A stretch of DNA of 63,760 nt, counting the filler, from Reticulomyxa filosa (taxonomy: Eukaryota; Protista; Foraminifera): NCBI GenBank assembly GCA_000512085.1. It is 19 parts of 19 records of this genome, joined end to end, with 100 filler letters (N's around TTAATTAATTAA, not from the genome) between each part and the next. Parts side by side here need not be neighbours in the genome. Positions count along the whole stretch, not along the records: positions 22,276 to 43,101 come from ASPP01037485.1; 18 more parts are not named here. The stretch is one strand, 5' to 3'. The translations under genes and the position numbers were made by a program. Under the pieces are notes generated by a model that made no database searches, was not told the DNA's origin, and worked only from the letters and a program-made list of their open reading frames with translations. Positions 22,276 to 31,243 of the stretch are shown here, one piece after another (position 1 is the first letter of the stretch; each line of letters begins with the position of its first letter).

Positions 22276-22343
22276 CATGGAGAAAATCGATTCTCTTCGT
22301 ATAGTGCCATTTAGGTATGCAGTTTTTTTTGCAATCTACTGTA
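22276..22343 (-). mobile_element. Tc1/mariner-like terminal repeat, copy A
   Basis: Similar to 23362-23487 and 61921-62053; all three end at ACTG|TA. Confidence 0.55.
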
Positions 22344-23361
22344 GTAACAATAACATAATGATAAGCAATAAAGCCGATCTTTTGGTAGTACAATTATCGC
22401 GGCGACTGTTATTTAACTCATAGTGTGCATCTTTTCAAATTGTTGTTCAATGAAATCACAATATATCATTTGCAAGTTGTAGCAAATCAATTGAAGTATA
22501 ATACAAGAATATTGAACTCGAATGAAATACAATTAAGTGTATTTTTTAAAGTTTGAACGAACAATCAGTGATCACTCCAATGCAAAGTATATAATCATGT
22601 TGGGCTTTGTTTTATTCAACAAAAAACGAAGAAAAATGAGTACTTCTTTGTGATAGGTGTAAACAAATACATTTGCATATATTAATTTGCTATTTTCAAT
22701 CGATGAAAGTGACAACATTGGATCGTGTATTCATATCAATCGGCAGAATGACACAATCAAGTACGATCAACACACTCTTTGTTTTGCTGTCCGATATATA
22801 ATCGTCATTCAAAACGATACCACAGTCAACAAAAAAAATCAAATGCTTTAAAAAAAAGCTGATAAAATTACACCAAAAAAATTGTCATCATTATCTAATT
22901 TCGCAGTAAGGCATATAAATCAAACCTGATGTAAGTTTTTTGCATCTTTATATATTTTTGAATTTTGTACAAAATTTGCATACTGAAGTCAACTGTTATT
23001 TTTATAATCTGAGCAATAAAACGTACTGTTCAGCACTTTTTTTAAATTAATTTTATAACTAAAGCAAATTCAAGTTGTGATATTGTTTTTATTAAATGTA
23101 ATATTTTTAATTTTAACTAATCTTTCAAATCTTAATTCAATAATTTTCAAAAGTTTTTGTTCTAATAACTCCCACAAAAGTAAATCCTTGTTCATCAAAA
23201 AAAATCCTTTTCAAAATAATCTAAAATCTGACGTTTGAACCTGTTTACTAATTCAAACTAATAATAATAAATAAAATCAATACTTTTTTTTAACGTTGCA
23301 ATCAATTCATTTCAAAAAGCCAAACTTTGAAACAAAAAAAAAAAAGAGAAATTTTATATTT

Positions 23362-23487
23362 AAAAACTACAAGATTTGCAGATATTTTTAAAAAATTAGG
23401 GTTAAATGTTTATTTTTCATGGAGAAAATTGACTCTCTTCATGCAGGTGCCATTTAGATATGACAGTTTTTTTTGCAACTTACTGTA
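23362..23487 (-). mobile_element. Tc1/mariner-like terminal repeat, copy B
   Basis: Minus strand reads TA|CAGTAAGTTGCAAAAAAAACTGTCATATCTAAATGGCAC. The internal part also matches 19355-19430. Confidence 0.55.
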
Positions 23488-23647
23488 GTTTAAACTTGTG
23501 TTAGAAGAATTACATAGATTGAATGTTTTTTTTAGCAAAATTTTCAAAGAAAGTTTTCTTTCAATTGAATTTTTATCAAGACTTCAGAGGACACTATTTA
23601 CAAAAAATCTTTTGTTAAGCTAGTAAAAGGGAGGTAGTTTGCAATAG

Positions 23648-25186
23648 TTATGACTTATGTTGTGACATTTCATTTAAAATAAATTTCACTAATTGTTCAA
23701 TATCATATCTTGATTCCGCTTTAATCTGGTCATTCTCAATAGCTAAAATTAGTTTTTCACAGTCTTGTTGTGCTCTCCGGCAAATAATCACGTTATCGTC
23801 ATATCCTAGCACAGTGTCTTTAATTTGTATAACCGATTTTTTTATAGGACTTAGCAAACGATTCGATAGTGTAATTAAATCCTGTTTTCGAGCAATCGTC
23901 AAATGACGTGCCAAATCCTGAATCACTGAATATTGTTCCATAGGATCTGCAAAAAATGCTACTAATGTTTTGGCCTTTGATGTTTGTCTGCTCTTGTAAA
24001 TGGTTTCAGCAATAGTCCCAACAATATTAGAGCCTGGAATTGGGATAGCAGAAAGACCTACCTTTGTAGCAGAAATATACCATGGCACGTTGGGATCGAC
24101 TTTTCCACTATAAAGCACACGTGCAATTAAAAATTTATTATTTAATGTTGCAATTACTGTCTCGTAGTATACATTTAGTTTAGTATTTTTTCTAATTGTA
24201 TTCATTATTATTATTTTTTTTTTTTTCTCTTGATGTTCTTCAACAATTGCTCTTAATGTATCCTTGCCAATCTCGTCTGATGAGTCAATATCACTATTTT
24301 TCTTTTCTCCGTTATTATCTATAAATATATCTTGCAAATTCTCATTTGGATGTTCTCTGCTGGCCTCAATAAATACTGGTAAAAGATTTTGCTCAACATT
24401 ACTTTCCACTTTGTGTCCAGTTGACTCTTCTTCAATGACTTTTTCTTCGGATTGTGATTGTACCCATTTATCATTTTTTTGATCCTGTGCATTTAATGTA
24501 TTTTCTTTTTGTAAAGGCTGCACTTTTACATTTTCATGGTATTCTTGAATAAAATTTTCAAGAACAATAATTTCAAAACACTGCCAAATATTGTCTATGT
24601 TTATACTGCTTTCTTTACGAATCGTATCACTGGGGCTAATCTTTGCAGAATGCAAAGAAGCTATTATCTCTTGTGCATAGCACCTAATATCGTGATCTGT
24701 ATCATTTAAACAAAGTGTCAATTGATTCAGCACGCCTTCTATTGCGGCTGCTGGTCCCATCATATTCAATGCCTCTGCTGCGTTATAGCGAACAAATTTA
24801 TTTTCATCCCTCAAGGCCACAGTCAATGCATTCAATACATCTTTTGTTGCTACAGCTGGCCCAAAACCACCCAACGTTTTAGCTGCATTAATACGAGTAC
24901 AATAATCATTTTCACTCAAAGCGACAACCAGAGTATTTATTAATTCTTCTATAACAATCGATTGGCCTATCAAACATAACGTCTCTGCTGCTCCTTTGCG
25001 AATATAATGATATTCATCATTTAAAACAACAGTAGTTAATCCTTTCAATACATTTTCAGTTGCTGCTGCTGGACCAAATGTACTCAACGTCTTTACTGCC
25101 TTCAAACGAACAAGCTCTTCTTTGTCTTTCAAAGCAATCGTCAATCCTTCCAACACACTTTTCGTAACCGAGGCAGGTGCCATCAA
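23648..25186 (-). CDS. Segment 5: HEAT repeats, acidic linker, C-terminal helical/hydrophobic domain
   Basis: 35-aa repeats of the form LxxALxDxxxxVRxxAAxxLxxxGPAAAxxxVL and a C-terminal VGLSAIPIPGSNIVGTIAETI. Confidence 0.85.
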   Translation of the reverse strand: MMAPASVTKSVLEGLTIALKDKEELVRLKAVKTLSTFGPAAATENVLKGLTTVVLNDEYHYIRKGAAETLCLIGQSIVIEELINTLVVALSENDYCTRINAAKTLGGFGPAVATKDVLNALTVALRDENKFVRYNAAEALNMMGPAAAIEGVLNQLTLCLNDTDHDIRCYAQEIIASLHSAKISPSDTIRKESSINIDNIWQCFEIIVLENFIQEYHENVKVQPLQKENTLNAQDQKNDKWVQSQSEEKVIEEESTGHKVESNVEQNLLPVFIEASREHPNENLQDIFIDNNGEKKNSDIDSSDEIGKDTLRAIVEEHQEKKKKIIIMNTIRKNTKLNVYYETVIATLNNKFLIARVLYSGKVDPNVPWYISATKVGLSAIPIPGSNIVGTIAETIYKSRQTSKAKTLVAFFADPMEQYSVIQDLARHLTIARKQDLITLSNRLLSPIKKSVIQIKDTVLGYDDNVIICRRAQQDCEKLILAIENDQIKAESRYDIEQLVKFILNEMSQHKS

Positions 25187-28100
25187 GCCCAGTATCTCAA
25201 CTCGCTTTGACGAATATACCAGTCTTCGTCTTTCAAAGTCATTAGCAATTCATTCAACACACTTTCTGTTACCGCGGCTGGTCCCAGCAAACCCAATATC
25301 CTTACTGCGTTCTGTCGATTGTACTTACTTGCGTCGCGCAAGAAAGTGCTTAACTGATACAATATCGGAGCTATCGTTGCTGAACCAAATCTACTCAATG
25401 CCTCTAGTGCGTTATTACAAACTTCAATATCTTCATCATTTAAAGCCCTTGTTAGTTGATCGATTACATTTTCTATCGCTGCAGCGGGTCCCATCAAACC
25501 CAAAACCTTTGCTGCATTCTGCCGAATGTATCTATTTTCGCTTCTCAAAGCGGTAGCCAATTGACTCACCATATCCTTTGTAGCCGCTTTTGGTCCCAAT
25601 GAACAGAGTACGTTTGTTATCGTTACTTTGATATAATCGTCTTTGCTGTTTAAGATAACAGCCAATTGGGTTACTATGTCGTCTATTGCCGCGACTGGTC
25701 CCAATAAGCCCACTGTTTTTATTGCTGTTTCGAGAACACTGAGATCGTCTTTCTTCAATATAAGAACTAGTTGGTTTAATATACTCTCTGTGGCCGCCTC
25801 GGGTCCTATCAGACCTATTGACTGCAATATTTTTAAGCGAATGGTTTCATTCTTATCTCTCAAGGCAATTTCTAATTGGGCCAGCATAGACTGCGTTTGC
25901 TCTTTTCCAATTCCATTTACTGCCCTCAGGTATTTTACAATATTGCTTGCTTCCTCATTGATAAAAATATCTTTGACTCTTTTGTCAAATTTCTCTAAAA
26001 ACTGGAGCAAATTACTCTTAAAGTGTTGCACGTCAATTCGACTTGATGATGTAAAAAAATTTTTGAATTGGTTGTGATACACAGCATCGATTTGTTTAAA
26101 CAAGTTATTTTGTGGTGGATGATAGCGAAAGAATAATGCTTGTGGAATACTTTGAACAGTTGATGAAAATGTTGTGTTTGCAATTATTACCTGTTCGAGC
26201 TGACATCGTCCGCTTGGCAATGTCAATTCTGTTAATCCAGTTGAATCAAGCAATTTACATTCTTGAATATCCAACACAGACAATACATTACTTCCTGTCG
26301 AAATATTTTCAATAATTGAACATCCACTGAGATATAATGACTCCAAGGCAGGGGCCTTCAATTTCAAACTCGTCAGGGTGACAGCACCAATCATTCTCCA
26401 TTTTTTTAAAACTAACATTACATGTGATATTTCCACTTTTGTTAATTGCCTGCAATTATTTGCTTGAAAGCATTCCAATTTCATGGCTTGAAGTTTGCCT
26501 AATATGGTCAAACCTGATTCGTCTAAAACTAATTCAGTTAATGATGGAAACATAAGTAATAAAGTTCCTTGTAATTGAGAGCAACGTCTTGCTATCAGAG
26601 TTTGCAATGTTTGACATTGTTGTGCAACAATGCTGAGAGCTTTGTCATTTATATTCGAATCGCTAACATTCAACCAACTTAAATTGTGCATTCCAGAAAG
26701 GAAGGTCTGGATGGTCATAGGAAGATTTGCTCTTATTCTATCAGGACGATAGGAATCCCAAATGTTAAAATTGAAGCCACGTAGAGATAACTCTTCAAAA
26801 GAATGCAATTGCACAATTTGTGATAATTTTAGGTGTTGTTCATCTGTCAATCTATTCCAATCGAAAGGAAGCAAGCCGTGTTCAGCGTCTCCTTTTAGTA
26901 CCAATGACTTATGTTCTACTGAAAGCAACTCTTCAAATGGTTTAAAACTTCCTAACGACAGCTGCTCACAAATTTTTTCTAGTTGCTGTTGTTGATGGCT
27001 CAATTGATCAAGTTCTGCCAATGCCTCAGCTGGTGTTAAGTCTTTCAATTCCCAGTAAGTTGTCTCCAGGACATCACTCACTTGCAAGCTGAACCAAGCA
27101 CGAGACAATGTATGCAGTGCGCGTGTGTTGGATTCCAATACGCCATGTTGGTTCAATTTATATCTTCCCAGTTGGGCTAATCTTTGGATTGGAGACTTGT
27201 ATTTCTTCAATGCATCGTTGTAAGTAATTCCTACTTTGGGATGAATTTGGATAAGGCATTGTAATCCTGTTACATCTGGATAATGCTGTAACAAAGTGCG
27301 AAGCCTCAACCATCGACTGTATATAGCAACTGCGTCTCCTTTTTTTAGAGGGATCGGAATGGTACAACTTTTATTTGAAGCGTGATGCCAACGATGAAGA
27401 ATTTGAGAAGAAAATAATTTTCCATACATCTCATTTTGTGATTGCGTATCTCGAAATATAGAGTCCATTGTTTGTCTTACATCCAACGCCAAAAATCTGT
27501 CTCTTGCTGTCGAATTTATTTGACGATGCATATGATCAAAACAAAACAAAATTGTTTTAATTTGCAATTGAAGAGTTCCGCTATCTTTATCCGGAAGCCA
27601 ATCAGGAAATAATGCATGATCGTGATCAATGCTCACCAATGTATCTGTTTCATTATTTAAAGGCTTGACGATATAATTGGTTGGCAAGCCATCTTCTGGA
27701 TTCGTTAATAGTGAAACGAATAACAACTCGGTATAATGTTGATGATCTAATTTATTTAATCTCTCTGGCTCTTTTTTCAAGAACTTTTTGTAACGTAGGT
27801 CCATGAATAGCCTCAGAACAAAGGACCGGTATTGAAGTACCATTAGCATATGTCAAACATACCAATTCACTGTGATATGTTCCATGGCCTATTATTCGAT
27901 AGTGAAATTGCTCCATCAAATAACTCATTCCTGGCATTTCGGGCCAAGCCTTGGCATAAATTATTGGTGGTACATTGGACTCCACTCTTACTGGAATCAC
28001 ATCTCTTTGTCCACCGGATATCGTACTTTTCCTATACTCTCCAGTCTCATCTAATAACTGAGCAGCTATGTTTCCCTTTAATGGCTTGCATCCACCAATC

Positions 28101-31100
28101 AATGGACTATTAATTGTGGGTTCATTTGCTTTTGGTGCACGCTCTTCTACTAACATTTGAAGAATGACTCTCCATCTCTTTTTTTCTTCTTTCCAAAATG
28201 TTGTTTCTCCACGTTTATCTGGCAAACGGTGCAACGCAGTTAAGACATCACCAATAAACTTTTTAGTAATCTCATCTGACTTTTTTTGACGAAGAATTAA
28301 AATTTGACGAAATGCTACTCGAACGTCGATACCATCTAATAATTGATAAACACTTTGATATGTTTTCAAATCATTGCATTTTATCAATAATGCATCAATA
28401 AGTCGTGATAAAATTGATTTGTCGTTTTTCAAATCAATACCCAGTTCTTTTTCGCATTTTTTTAATGCATTCATCCATGACTTATGTGCCTCATCAAATG
28501 CGGGTCGTAACAATGTAAACAATTGGCATCGAGAACGGGGCGATGCGGACGAAAATTCTTTTCCATCTTGTTCTTTCCGGTACCATTCAACAATAGACTC
28601 ATTTACACTACTATTTTGTTGTTTTTTTTCGTCTTTCCATTGCTGTATTCGTTTAATCCATTGGGGATGATAATTTTGAATTTCTTGTTGGCATTTATCT
28701 AACCAATTATACGATTGGTGGCAATTGATATCACTATTCGAACACGCTCTTTTATATGCTTCAAGCTCCGTCACAAATATAGCCTTCTCTTCAGGGACAA
28801 CAAGCAAGTCCTTGCACACTCCCAGTAATTCTGCATGTAGGTCAGCTTGCACACAATTGACAGCCCAATTACGAATTAATGATTGATGCCAAATATTCCA
28901 TTGATTGATTTTGCAAAGTGCAAGGATATATCGCTGATTTTGCGCTTGTACTTCTATAGCCATGCCCTCAATGTTGTGAGGGCTCAAACAAAAACGAGCT
29001 CGATAGCATTTGATAACCTCATCTGTTTCATTGAATTTTGCATAAACTAACATGCAACCAAGTGCATCAACTTGATGAATCATCACTTTCTTCAAAAAAT
29101 AGTGGATTTTCTTCATCTTTCCATTGTTTTACACGTTGATAAAGAGGCCACAAAGTTGCGAACAATTGTGTCAATTGATTTTGTTCTTTTGGACTGAGAC
29201 GATAAGGTCGCGCTACTGAAGAAGAAACTTGCGTATTTGGTCGGTATAACCATTCATGAGCAGATTGACAATACATTTGAGTTTTAATACGCCACTCCAA
29301 CGCCTGATGAAGTAGTGAATTCAAAAGATGAATTGTTTCATTACAAACTGCGCCTACTTTTTGTAAAGCGTCTAATTGATCTAGTGCGTGTCCAATTGCC
29401 AAGCCGTAATATAAACTTAAAGCCAACACAATTTGTTGAGGTAGTCGATATAACTGTTCCTTCACAAATATTCCAACGTGTCCTTTTTCTAACGCACTTA
29501 CTGTTTGTGACATTGGGTTGAGGGTTTCCACAATTTGTTGAACAATCCCTAGAGACATATCTTTTTGTAATTGATGCGGCTTTAACCAATTTCCTAAATT
29601 AGTCTTTAAATGTTTACGCAAGGAATTTTGATAATGCAAAAATAACTCATCTGATCCAACCACTTTCTGGCAATTCAACAGGATTTGACGATCCGTCAAT
29701 GTCCAGTTTTCAACTTTTTGAATGCTAACCAAGTCAGTTGGCGTATGAAGCAATAGATCTGGATTTCGGTGAGGCATATAGAGACGATTCGCATGCAATC
29801 CACTGCAAATGATTTGTGATTGTTCATTATGATTGTCAAATAACTTTAAAAATTCTTCAGAAGTCTCTCCTAAACCAACTAATGTTATCTCAAACATGGA
29901 ACTAGATTTTATAAAGTATTTACGAATTTCAATGTTATCTTCTGCAATTAAACAAGCACACTCAATGTCCGAATAAGGTGTTGCTTCCTCACGTCCCAGC
30001 GATCCTAACGCTAACAATGCATATTCACAAGGAGGTGGAGGCAATCGATCCACAACAAATTTCCAAATTATTTTCAACATACTGCACAATCCCTTTGTAA
30101 TCTGTTTTGTAACCTCGAGTGGAGAAGTATCTTTTTTTGCTGTACATTGTTGGCGTAACTGCGCCAACTTCCTTTTCCATGTATCGTACAATTGCAGTGG
30201 AACTGATTTTGTACTGGGTAATGCCTGTGCCAAAATCCGTATTTGTTGACTTGATGCCTGTCTTTGCCATAACAATGCATTGGGCAAAGCAAGATGGTTC
30301 GCCGCTATTGTCCAAGCAACTGTTGCATAGCCCATTGCTTGGCGATAAATATCGACTTTTCCTTGTGTGTCATCCACACAAAAGATATTGGATAACGTGG
30401 CATCACTAAGTGATAATAAACATGCAATTGCAAGCTGAGGAATTGATTGCATGGACTCCATTGCCAATGCTTCATATTCTAAACAGCATATTGATAATTG
30501 ATGTTCTCTCATCTTTTTTTTGCAAATTGCTGAGCTTTTGAAAAAGACAGTCGAATGTCTTGAGCACGGTCATATTTCGCTTGCAACGAGATTTGAATAT
30601 CCAAATCAAGATGATCGGGCCAATATATTGGCGGTTGTAGATAAGAGATTACCTCAATATGTTTATGCTTCAGTGTTTCATGCTCAGGACGATTACCATC
30701 GACAGTAATTATAGATATATTCGCTCGATGTTCTAAAAGCCATAAAATTGCTTCAAGTTGCCCATTACGGGCTGCTTTATGCAATGCAGTACAACCACAA
30801 TGATTTGTTTGATTTACGTCCAATTCAGGAAACGTGTCCACTATCCATTGCATTACCTGATATTGCCCAATTGCGGCTACGGCATGAAAAAGAGTTTCTC
30901 CTTTTTCATCAACTTTATTTATCATTTTTTTAATTAACTCTGGAGGCATATGTTCTTCCAACCATTTTGTTGCGTCTTCAGCATTTTGACTTTGTTTCAC
31001 TCCATTTGCCCAATAAAAGAGTATGTTCTGTTTCTTTTCATCGCATACCTGTATTAAAGATTTATCACATCTCAAATACTCTGCAGCATCACTCCATTTT

Positions 31101-31243
31101 CCATGATACAATGCATCAAGAAATAATTCGTGTGAGGACGTATTTGGATTGTTTTGCACTGTAGTCCAGTCTAGATTGTCTTTCTGTATCCATTGTTCTC
31201 CTGTTAGAGACCCACTTCTTGGCAGGTTTGATTCAGTTGCCAT
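23648..31243 (-). CDS. Giant multidomain protein (~2530 aa): ankyrin, GlnD/GlnE/DUF294-type nucleotidyltransferase, atypical (PI3/4K/HipA-like) kinase, LRR, HEAT repeats, C-terminal domain; split by 4 single-base frame breaks
   Basis: Five overlapping same-strand ORFs. Motifs continue across the breaks (GPTLQKVLEK/EPERL and RQS/VEILGLMAPAS). The 7596-nt span is divisible by 3 and contains no intron-like stretches. Confidence 0.8.
25183..29116 (-). CDS. Segments 3-4: helical linker, atypical kinase-like domain, LRRs, first HEAT repeats
   Basis: IYAKAWPEMPG (beta3 Lys), PVLCSEAIHG, LLTNPEDGLPTNYIV (DxxxxN catalytic loop) and LVSIDHDH (DFG-equivalent). LRRs include LSWLNVSDSNI, LTELVLDESGL and LESLYLSGCS. 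Confidence 0.75.
29067..30512 (-). CDS. Segment 2: Pol-beta-superfamily nucleotidyltransferase (GlnD/GlnE/DUF294-like) with helical substrate-binding domain
   Basis: PPCEYALLALGSLGREEATPYSDIECACL (GS-x-GR-x-E-x4-SD-x-[DE]) at ~29950-30035, and downstream VKEQLYRLP. Confidence 0.8.
   Translation of the reverse strand: MREHQLSICCLEYEALAMESMQSIPQLAIACLLSLSDATLSNIFCVDDTQGKVDIYRQAMGYATVAWTIAANHLALPNALLWQRQASSQQIRILAQALPSTKSVPLQLYDTWKRKLAQLRQQCTAKKDTSPLEVTKQITKGLCSMLKIIWKFVVDRLPPPPCEYALLALGSLGREEATPYSDIECACLIAEDNIEIRKYFIKSSSMFEITLVGLGETSEEFLKLFDNHNEQSQIICSGLHANRLYMPHRNPDLLLHTPTDLVSIQKVENWTLTDRQILLNCQKVVGSDELFLHYQNSLRKHLKTNLGNWLKPHQLQKDMSLGIVQQIVETLNPMSQTVSALEKGHVGIFVKEQLYRLPQQIVLALSLYYGLAIGHALDQLDALQKVGAVCNETIHLLNSLLHQALEWRIKTQMYCQSAHEWLYRPNTQVSSSVARPYRLSPKEQNQLTQLFATLWPLYQRVKQWKDEENPLFFEESDDSSS
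30509..31243 (-). CDS. Segment 1: ankyrin repeats
   Basis: GETLFHAVAAIGQYQVMQWIV and GCTALHKAARNGQLEAILWLLEHRANI. Confidence 0.9.
   Translation of the reverse strand: MATESNLPRSGSLTGEQWIQKDNLDWTTVQNNPNTSSHELFLDALYHGKWSDAAEYLRCDKSLIQVCDEKKQNILFYWANGVKQSQNAEDATKWLEEHMPPELIKKMINKVDEKGETLFHAVAAIGQYQVMQWIVDTFPELDVNQTNHCGCTALHKAARNGQLEAILWLLEHRANISIITVDGNRPEHETLKHKHIEVISYLQPPIYWPDHLDLDIQISLQAKYDRAQDIRLSFSKAQQFAKKR

Follow-up and report, generated by a model that had tools for sequence, protein, structure and literature searches.

Five overlapping open reading frames (ORFs) on one strand of genomic DNA from the foraminiferan Reticulomyxa filosa raise the question of whether they make up a single gene and, if so, what kind of protein that gene encodes, where it came from and whether the organism still uses it. 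The ORFs lie between positions 31243 and 23648, on the minus strand of the window, by which we mean the whole stretch of DNA that was analysed: 63,760 nucleotides, assembled from 19 parts of 19 records of one assembly (GCA_000512085.1) that were joined end to end with filler. The part that concerns us, positions 22276-43101, is record ASPP01037485.1 (20,826 bp). We consider it probable that the locus belongs to an effector-type gene family, with at least five R. filosa paralogues, that derives from horizontal transfer out of an intracellular, protist-associated bacterium and that encodes two enzymes set between repeat scaffolds. We base this reading on gene structure, the folds of the domains, conserved catalytic columns, kinship with bacterial proteins and nuclear context.

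Comparison with a paralogue confirms that window positions 31243-23648 are a single collinear coding region cut by four +/-1 frame changes. The five minus-strand ORFs (31243-30509, 30512-29067, 29116-27752, 27849-25183 and 25186-23648) encode 244, 481, 454, 888 and 512 amino acids (aa), in that order, with short overlaps between neighbours. The R. filosa paralogue model P0006 (2,551 aa) spans all five collinearly in tblastn searches (frames 2>1>2>3>2; E = 0 for each segment), and in this alignment homology runs through the junctions without a gap, a loss of sequence or an intron-like insert. The chain begins with MATESNLP and ends with ILNEMSQHKS, which are also the termini of the R. filosa paralogues, and there is no in-frame stop across 7.6 kb of AT-rich coding region. 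Because homology is complete at the junctions and the paralogues stay in one frame there, these are +/-1 frame changes and not introns or gene boundaries. We considered introns as the source of the frame changes and ruled them out, given that homology is ungapped and that the breaks fall within repeats and domains; programmed frameshifting was ruled out as well, there being four sites, of both signs, at which the paralogues stay in frame. A preliminary description of this DNA had rejoined the five same-strand overlapping ORFs into one broken chain of about 2,530 aa; its coordinates prove exact and P0006 is collinear over all of it. From N- to C-terminus, the chain is laid out as follows (positions in the window, all on the minus strand).

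23648-31243, minus strand: whole coding region, about 2,530 codons, intronless, with four +/-1 frame changes (ORFs and collinear tblastn with P0006)
30638-30931, minus strand: ankyrin repeats, ORF1 residues ~105-202 (Pfam Ank_2, E 6.8e-23; Ank_4, E 3e-18)
29106-30404, minus strand: predicted GlnE/DrrA-type adenylyltransferase, a Pol-beta nucleotidyltransferase (NTase) core plus a helical substrate-binding part (DUF294, DrrA profile match, model)
28178-29066, minus strand: helical stretch linking the two enzymes; bacterial relatives conserve its final ~100 residues (phmmer, ORF3)
27154-28177, minus strand: kinase domain resembling type II phosphatidylinositol 4-kinase (PI4KII), split by frame break 3 (homologue search, alignment A1, paralogue model)
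26704-27153, minus strand: helical extension after the kinase fold, family-wide (A1 and model helices at residues 314-490)
26170-26703, minus strand: probable cysteine-containing (FBXL-like) leucine-rich repeats (LRRs) (sub-threshold Pfam, FBXL2)
24632-25977, minus strand: twelve PBS-type HEAT units of ~35 aa, unit 7 cut by frame break 4 (HEAT_2, E 5.6e-22 and 2.2e-19)
24200-24631, minus strand: acidic or Lys-rich low-complexity linker, with an A13 run at ~24226 (translation, homopolymer list)
23651-24199, minus strand: C-terminal domain of ~180 aa, in R. filosa paralogues only (phmmer: P0006 and L001 only)

The first enzyme is encoded in ORF2, which matches Pfam DUF294 at E 3.6e-8 (33.8 bits; cutoff 21); SidM_N reaches 19 bits on the same ORF, under its cutoff of 27, and single-sequence searches of the gene pieces against the Protein Data Bank returned weak NTase and alphaRep matches only. 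When 15 relatives were combined into a profile (A3), the best solved relative was Legionella DrrA (6yx5_B, E 4.9e-11), matched in two stretches that span its core and helical part. The window's own NTase segment was modelled with AlphaFold (predicted local distance difference test, pLDDT, 87; predicted template-modelling score, pTM, 0.89), and the model superposes on DrrA with Z 28.4 and a root-mean-square deviation (rmsd) of 3.9 over 318 of 339 residues. Superposition on the two GlnE halves gives Z 24.2 and 23.0, against about 10 for the best fold of unrelated type; Foldseek agrees. The NTase motif GSLGREEATPYSDIE at 30005-29961 fits the pattern hG[GS]-x(9-13)-[DE]-x-[DE], its G-S...S-D-I-E residues are intact, and the G, S, S, D and E columns are invariant or nearly so in A3. 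Judging from profile and model, the ORF2 domain is a GlnE/DrrA-type protein adenylyltransferase, which agrees with its earlier placement in the GlnD/GlnE/DUF294 branch of Pol-beta NTases. A cGAS/OAS-like synthesis of second messengers, the other activity that had been proposed for it, is disfavoured because the nearest folds are those of protein adenylyltransferases.

The second enzyme, formed by the final part of ORF3 together with the first part of ORF4, is covered by no Pfam or NCBIfam model, and the domain carries no NCBIfam name in Legionella-like or other relatives; Pfam PI3_PI4_kinase matches only two of 41 members, at E 0.07 or weaker. An exhaustive HMMER search with the ORF4 part finds 567 representative proteins at E <= 1e-3, mostly of 1,000-5,000 aa. 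Its alignment (A1) contains near-invariant columns for a Lys (K..PE.PG), a D-x4-N loop (NPEDGKPDNY) and an Asp (IDNDH), all of which are present in the window as the Lys motif YAKAWPEMPG (27958-27929), the catalytic loop NPEDGLPTNY (27702-27673) and SIDHDH (27633-27616); K76, D162, N167 and D184 are each at least 90% conserved in A1, and the window has all four. In many bacterial relatives (among P0019-P0150) there are two tandem PI4KII-like copies about 500 residues apart, the N-terminal one matching the C-lobe part only.

We modelled the kinase on the paralogue segment P0006:1090-1580, which is 72% identical to the window copy (pLDDT 90.5, pTM 0.90). The best match among 48,161 chains, by a clear margin, is PI4KII-alpha (4pla_A; Z 17.6, rmsd 3.1, 247 residues), followed by CotH and actin-fragmin kinase at 12.3, by PIKK, PI3K and PI4KIII at about 10, by HipA at 9.9 and by MavQ at 9.0, and Foldseek likewise ranks PI4KII-alpha first (4hnd_B, prob 1.0). 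Among the shapes of the ESM Atlas, type II PI4Ks of plants come nearest, at TM 0.47. A language-model search offers a lead only, its nearest Atlas feature cluster having LepB_N in 16% of members (score 0.90). At the level of fold, then, the model supports a second enzyme of the PI3/4K-HipA type with PI4KII-alpha as its closest match, and with it the kinase layout of that type proposed in the preliminary description. We found no published description of the kinase-like domain or of an NTase-kinase fusion in the literature, and the kinase-like family appears to be undescribed so far.

How far does the chain resemble systems that are already known? Its NTase is like DrrA/SidM of Legionella pneumophila in that this is the best match by both profile and fold, shares the Pol-beta core, the helical part and the G-S...D-x-[DE] motif, and is part of a multidomain protein from a bacterium that infects protists. 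However, what follows in DrrA is a Rab GEF and a P4M domain that binds PI4P, where the window chain has kinase, LRR and HEAT parts; identity is only about 15%, and in the window copy Asn occupies a conserved acidic position. GlnE, both of whose halves match the fold, and DUF294, whose gathering threshold ORF2 exceeds, are the other relatives of this enzyme; unlike GlnE, the window NTase lacks both a tandem AT/AR pair and a context of PII-type regulation, and is embedded in repeat scaffolds. For the kinase, type II PI4Ks (PI4KII-alpha and -beta, plant PI4K-gamma) share the fold, at Z 17.6 versus 12.3 for the next, and the Lys, D-x4-N and I-D-x-D layout, but identity is 9-12%, the window family has a helical extension of its own, and Pfam PI3_PI4_kinase misses it. 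A CCPCC palmitoylation motif is a feature of animal PI4KII, and the window translations contain none. LepB (through its N-terminal domain) and MavQ are comparable as bacterial effectors in which atypical PI-kinase folds remodel host phosphoinositides, although here the similarity is weak and confined to the level of fold or feature. The NEX2 family of Neochlamydia, with the order F-box, OTU, DUF294, TPR (Domman et al. 2014, PMC4209131), which we compared by its description, is similar as a large expanded family of amoeba symbionts that joins a DUF294 NTase to eukaryote-like repeats; it differs in its F-box, OTU and TPR parts, and the kinase-like domain is not reported there.

The closest counterparts of the whole chain are bacterial. 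A search for the same architecture in bacteria, which the preliminary description had called for, finds it in intact single ORFs of 2,500-2,950 aa, P0010 and P0018 among them, and the NTase-kinase pair occurs in at least 11 collected relatives. The claim that the architecture was uncharacterised holds: the kinase has no Pfam or NCBIfam model and we found no paper on it. But the architecture is not unique, since intact bacterial proteins share it. P0010 (2,839 aa) has ankyrin repeats, DUF294, DUF294_C, the kinase-like domain and HEAT repeats, and its locus (L004 10001-18520) lies between genes for TssE/F/G, ClpV and Hcp on one side and genes for PAAR-like DUF4280, VgrG and VipA/B on the other, which makes it a candidate very large cargo of a type VI secretion system (T6SS). 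The complete T6SS cluster around it also has ImpA, SciN and VasE. P0018 adjoins LolA, FtsK and a RarA-type gene; P0009 has a Coxiella CBUA0006_C domain and lies beside a WYL regulator; P0012 comes from a gammaproteobacterial metagenome-assembled genome (MAG), and Ca. Neptunochlamydia is the source of P0219, a 'DUF294' protein. Other members combine the same domains differently: in P0045 the kinase-like domain is joined to Arf/Ras/Roc GTPase domains, P0222 has DUF294 with NB-ARC and TPR in a STAND-like layout, and P0217 has DUF294 with many TPRs.

A scan of one genome per prokaryotic species, made with a narrower alignment (A2), turns up 37 loci with the kinase-like domain; its carriers are Chlamydiae, Legionellales, Dependentiae, Paracaedibacteraceae, Holosporales and further alpha- and gammaproteobacterial MAGs, and a single genome often has several such loci. 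The taxa that have the domain are the set of bacteria living in protists. In a tree of 66 rows the R. filosa sequences form one clade (SH-like approximate likelihood-ratio test, SH-aLRT, 100) that is sister to P0018 (96); together they fall inside a clade of ten rows (100), P0010 included, and this larger group is itself embedded among bacterial rows.

What might such a protein do? The adenylyltransferase would move AMP from ATP onto a hydroxyl side chain of a target protein, the phosphate acceptor of the kinase with its type II PI4K fold would be either a phosphoinositide or a protein at that same membrane, and the ankyrin, LRR and HEAT solenoids would select the targets. DrrA AMPylates Rab1 on PI4P membranes, so that Rab-type GTPases offer, by analogy, a precedent for the target; LepB and MavQ are Legionella lipid-kinase effectors. 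Because of this analogy with DrrA and with the lipid-kinase effectors, we infer that in the bacterial relatives the chain is most likely a secreted effector, delivered into the protist host and acting on membrane traffic. Secreted effectors are encoded in bacteria with a secretion system, whereas the window gene sits in a eukaryotic genome; in R. filosa the acquired copies may serve the host's own use or may now be decaying. The inferred part of this account comprises the substrates, whether the relatives are secreted, and the direction of use.

Several other origins for the locus need to be weighed against transfer from a bacterium. That the ORFs are five independent small genes with overlapping starts and stops might be suggested by the ATGA- and TTGA-type overlaps at two junctions and by the NCBI annotation, which has three separate genes here (244, 461 and 1,724 aa). 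Yet one junction interrupts the kinase domain and another a HEAT unit, the corresponding places in paralogues and bacterial relatives are read in a single frame, and the 1,724-aa NCBI model crosses breaks 3 and 4 by means of artificial introns that each drop about 30 residues, so that we give this reading next to no weight. Another possibility is contamination, that is, that the contig comes from a Midichloriaceae symbiont or another co-sequenced bacterium. The sequenced R. filosa culture does carry a Rickettsiales (Midichloriaceae) symbiont (PMC10847448), the gene is intronless, and all relatives with known context outside R. filosa are bacterial. However, the upstream neighbour on the same contig (~41234-31701, minus strand) is a giant AAA+ gene of AAA_7/AAA_5 type, one of a family of more than 30 R. 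filosa paralogues, whose GT..AG introns sit exactly at interruptions in homology (32259-32169, with a GTAAGT donor); a further frame-keeping GTAAG...CAG intron lies at ~37570-37462. At a distance of 1.6 kb from a paralogue of the family is a histone H2A gene (L046 8382-8831), and this independently supports nuclear residence; GC content at third codon positions (GC3) is 0.25-0.34 in the gene, near the 0.31-0.39 of the neighbouring exons; and we found no tRNA or bacterial gene elsewhere on the contig piece. From the intron-bearing neighbour, the H2A gene beside L046 and the similar GC3 we therefore conclude that the gene is nuclear, intronless among intron-bearing neighbours and of bacterial descent, and contamination becomes very improbable, bearing in mind that the linkage to host genes rests on the assembly. 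Scarcely more probable is a native innate-immune sensor of eukaryotic descent, whose repeat scaffold would sense a ligand and answer it by NMPylation or a second messenger together with phosphorylation. LRR, HEAT and ankyrin solenoids joined to enzymes do resemble sensor layouts, and one NTase relative (P0222) is fused to NB-ARC and TPR. But the window gene has no NACHT/NB-ARC, STAND, TIR, death-fold or other signalling module, its NTase is closest to protein adenylyltransferases and not to cGAS/OAS, and the family is nested in bacterial sequences and has effector-like contexts in bacteria. The preliminary description had left sensor and effector side by side: the sensor half finds no specific support in the absence of a signalling module, while bacterial kinship bears out the effector half, as regards origin.

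If the gene is a transferred effector gene, is it still a gene? There are at least five loci of the family in R. filosa (the window, L001, L002, L045 and L046), and rough values of the ratio of nonsynonymous to synonymous substitution rates (dN/dS) among the paralogues come to 0.05-0.17 over the kinase, to about 0.15 over the NTase and to 0.2-0.35 over the repeats. On these sequence comparisons there is a clear indication that the paralogues diverged under purifying selection, and because of it we take the family to have been functional, and used by the host, for most of the divergence since the copies' common ancestor. The window copy, for its part, is broken at four places, which we bounded by the positions of stop codons.

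30509-30569, minus strand: frame break 1, with an A8 run at 30521-30514 (P0002, P0003 and L045 read through in one frame)
29067-29128, minus strand: frame break 2, with a T6 run at 29099-29094 (stop positions, homopolymer list)
27752-27852, minus strand: frame break 3, inside the kinase domain, with an A6 run at 27777-27772 (stop positions, homopolymer list)
25183-25249, minus strand: frame break 4, inside a HEAT unit, without a homopolymer of 6 bases or more (stop positions, homopolymer list)

Whether these breaks are homopolymer errors of the assembly or real and recent decay is, in our estimation, a matter of about even odds. Homopolymer runs of 6 bases or more number 18 in the gene and make up 1.7% of its bases, and three of the four breaks coincide with one, at run lengths typical of pyrosequencing-type errors; in the neighbouring gene, too, a long T run (38467-38442) is the site of a frame change. 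Homopolymers are also preferred sites of natural indels. Public sequencing runs are of little help: no RNA run with the window sequence was found, and the only two runs that contain it, both labelled 'synthetic metagenome', match 21% of its words and comprise four short contigs, identical to the window, within 25998-28458. These contigs probably derive from the same assembly and not from new sequencing, and so provide no independent evidence. Suppose, then, that the frame changes are real and that this copy, perhaps with the whole R. filosa family, is a dead pseudogene, a decaying relic of transfer without present function. Break 4, away from any homopolymer, the replacement of a conserved NTase Asp by Asn in the window copy, and the disruption of every R. 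filosa copy, at differing places, would all fit. On the other hand, four indels have accumulated without a single in-frame stop, every kinase motif and each of the 12 HEAT units is intact, and dN/dS between paralogues is well under 1. We put the chance that the gene is dead at somewhat short of even. It remains our tentative and rather doubtful suggestion that the breaks are assembly errors and that R. filosa expresses domesticated effector genes, in which a DrrA-like AMPylase and a PI4KII-like kinase act together from one polypeptide.

Transfer of an effector-type family from a bacterium, and its use by the host, have to be weighed against a number of contrary observations. The tree is unrooted and comes from a quick search, and most of its metagenomic rows have no taxon, although the root would have to be placed on the R. 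filosa stem itself for R. filosa to be basal. The kinase model is that of the 72%-identical paralogue, since the window copy is broken inside the domain, and a fold of this kind can't separate lipid from protein substrates, the next-best matches (Z 12.3) being protein kinases. In the NTase the window reads GLHANRLYMP, with an Asn codon (AAT, 29789-29787) where 13 of 14 relatives have Asp; the motif pattern (G-h-x-h-D-x4-P) suggests that this column is the third acidic, metal-ligand position of the Pol-beta site, and because Asn stands at a family-conserved Asp the window NTase may be inactive even with an intact frame. No read or transcript covers any break, and the identical public fragments miss all the junctions. 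Paralogue dS, at 0.9-3.1, is near saturation, which is why dN/dS is rough. The other four copies are damaged too: L045 has two frame changes and L001 three or four, L001 lacks both catalytic Asp residues of the kinase (NPKNDLPINY, NINNNN), in L002 there are in-frame stops and the G-S motif is scrambled, and L046 lacks the NTase core, with parts missing. Such damage fits decay of the whole family. In L001 (7553-10717) the catalytic residues of the kinase are replaced by Asn-rich low complexity (NINNNNSN, NNNDDDDTN) and most HEAT units are gone, so that this copy is either a pseudokinase or decayed.

The remaining parts of the chain can be described more briefly. Ahead of the ankyrins is an N-terminal region of about 100 aa that is common to the R. 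filosa paralogues (it aligns with P0002 and P0003), and the linker at 28178-29066 belongs to no Pfam family. In the LRR region six LRR Pfam families match at E 0.0013-0.1, all below their cutoffs, and the A1 profile matches FBXL2 at E 0.0011; bacterial relatives have strong LRR_6 matches. Three kinds of repeat solenoid had been described for the chain, of which ankyrin and HEAT pass Pfam thresholds and the LRR remains sub-threshold; the count of about 12 HEAT units of 35 aa holds, twelve being present in the translation, and alphaRep matches in this region go down to E 9.5e-30. The C-terminal domain has no Pfam match, no Atlas lead and no bacterial counterpart among the collected homologues. 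Around the gene, the AAA+ neighbour has several short GT-AG introns; its first P-loop has SLIRC immediately after GETGC and lacks the usual GK[ST], and two of its ORF junctions overlap at long T runs (38467-38442 and 38819-38812). Downstream, the 1.4 kb at 22276-23647 have a GC content of 27% and contain neither a tRNA nor an ORF that reaches 60 aa.

The architecture combines kinds of protein that are already known, namely repeat-rich effectors, a DrrA-type AMPylase and atypical PI-kinase effectors. The window copy itself is of lower value, being broken in the assembly, without a conserved acidic residue in its NTase and possibly a pseudogene; the wider interest lies in the family. Chlamydiae, Legionellales, Dependentiae, Holosporales and related symbionts widely carry, in multiple copies, a kinase with the fold of type II PI4K that neither Pfam nor NCBIfam sees, and this PI4KII-like domain is a candidate for a new class of host-directed kinase. 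One sub-family fuses it to a DrrA-like AMPylase, which suggests effectors that carry two known routes to the takeover of membrane traffic in one chain. A free-living foraminiferan with at least five nuclear copies under purifying selection is, moreover, a possible case of a host that keeps and uses the effector genes of a symbiont. If the copies are indeed domesticated effectors, phosphoinositide marking and AMPylation of small GTPases would proceed from one polypeptide; and if the kinase family is what it seems, it would be a large and undescribed one, comprising over 560 clusters at 50% identity, with domains that often occur in tandem and are in some cases fused to Ras/Arf-type GTPases, and typical of bacteria that live inside protists.

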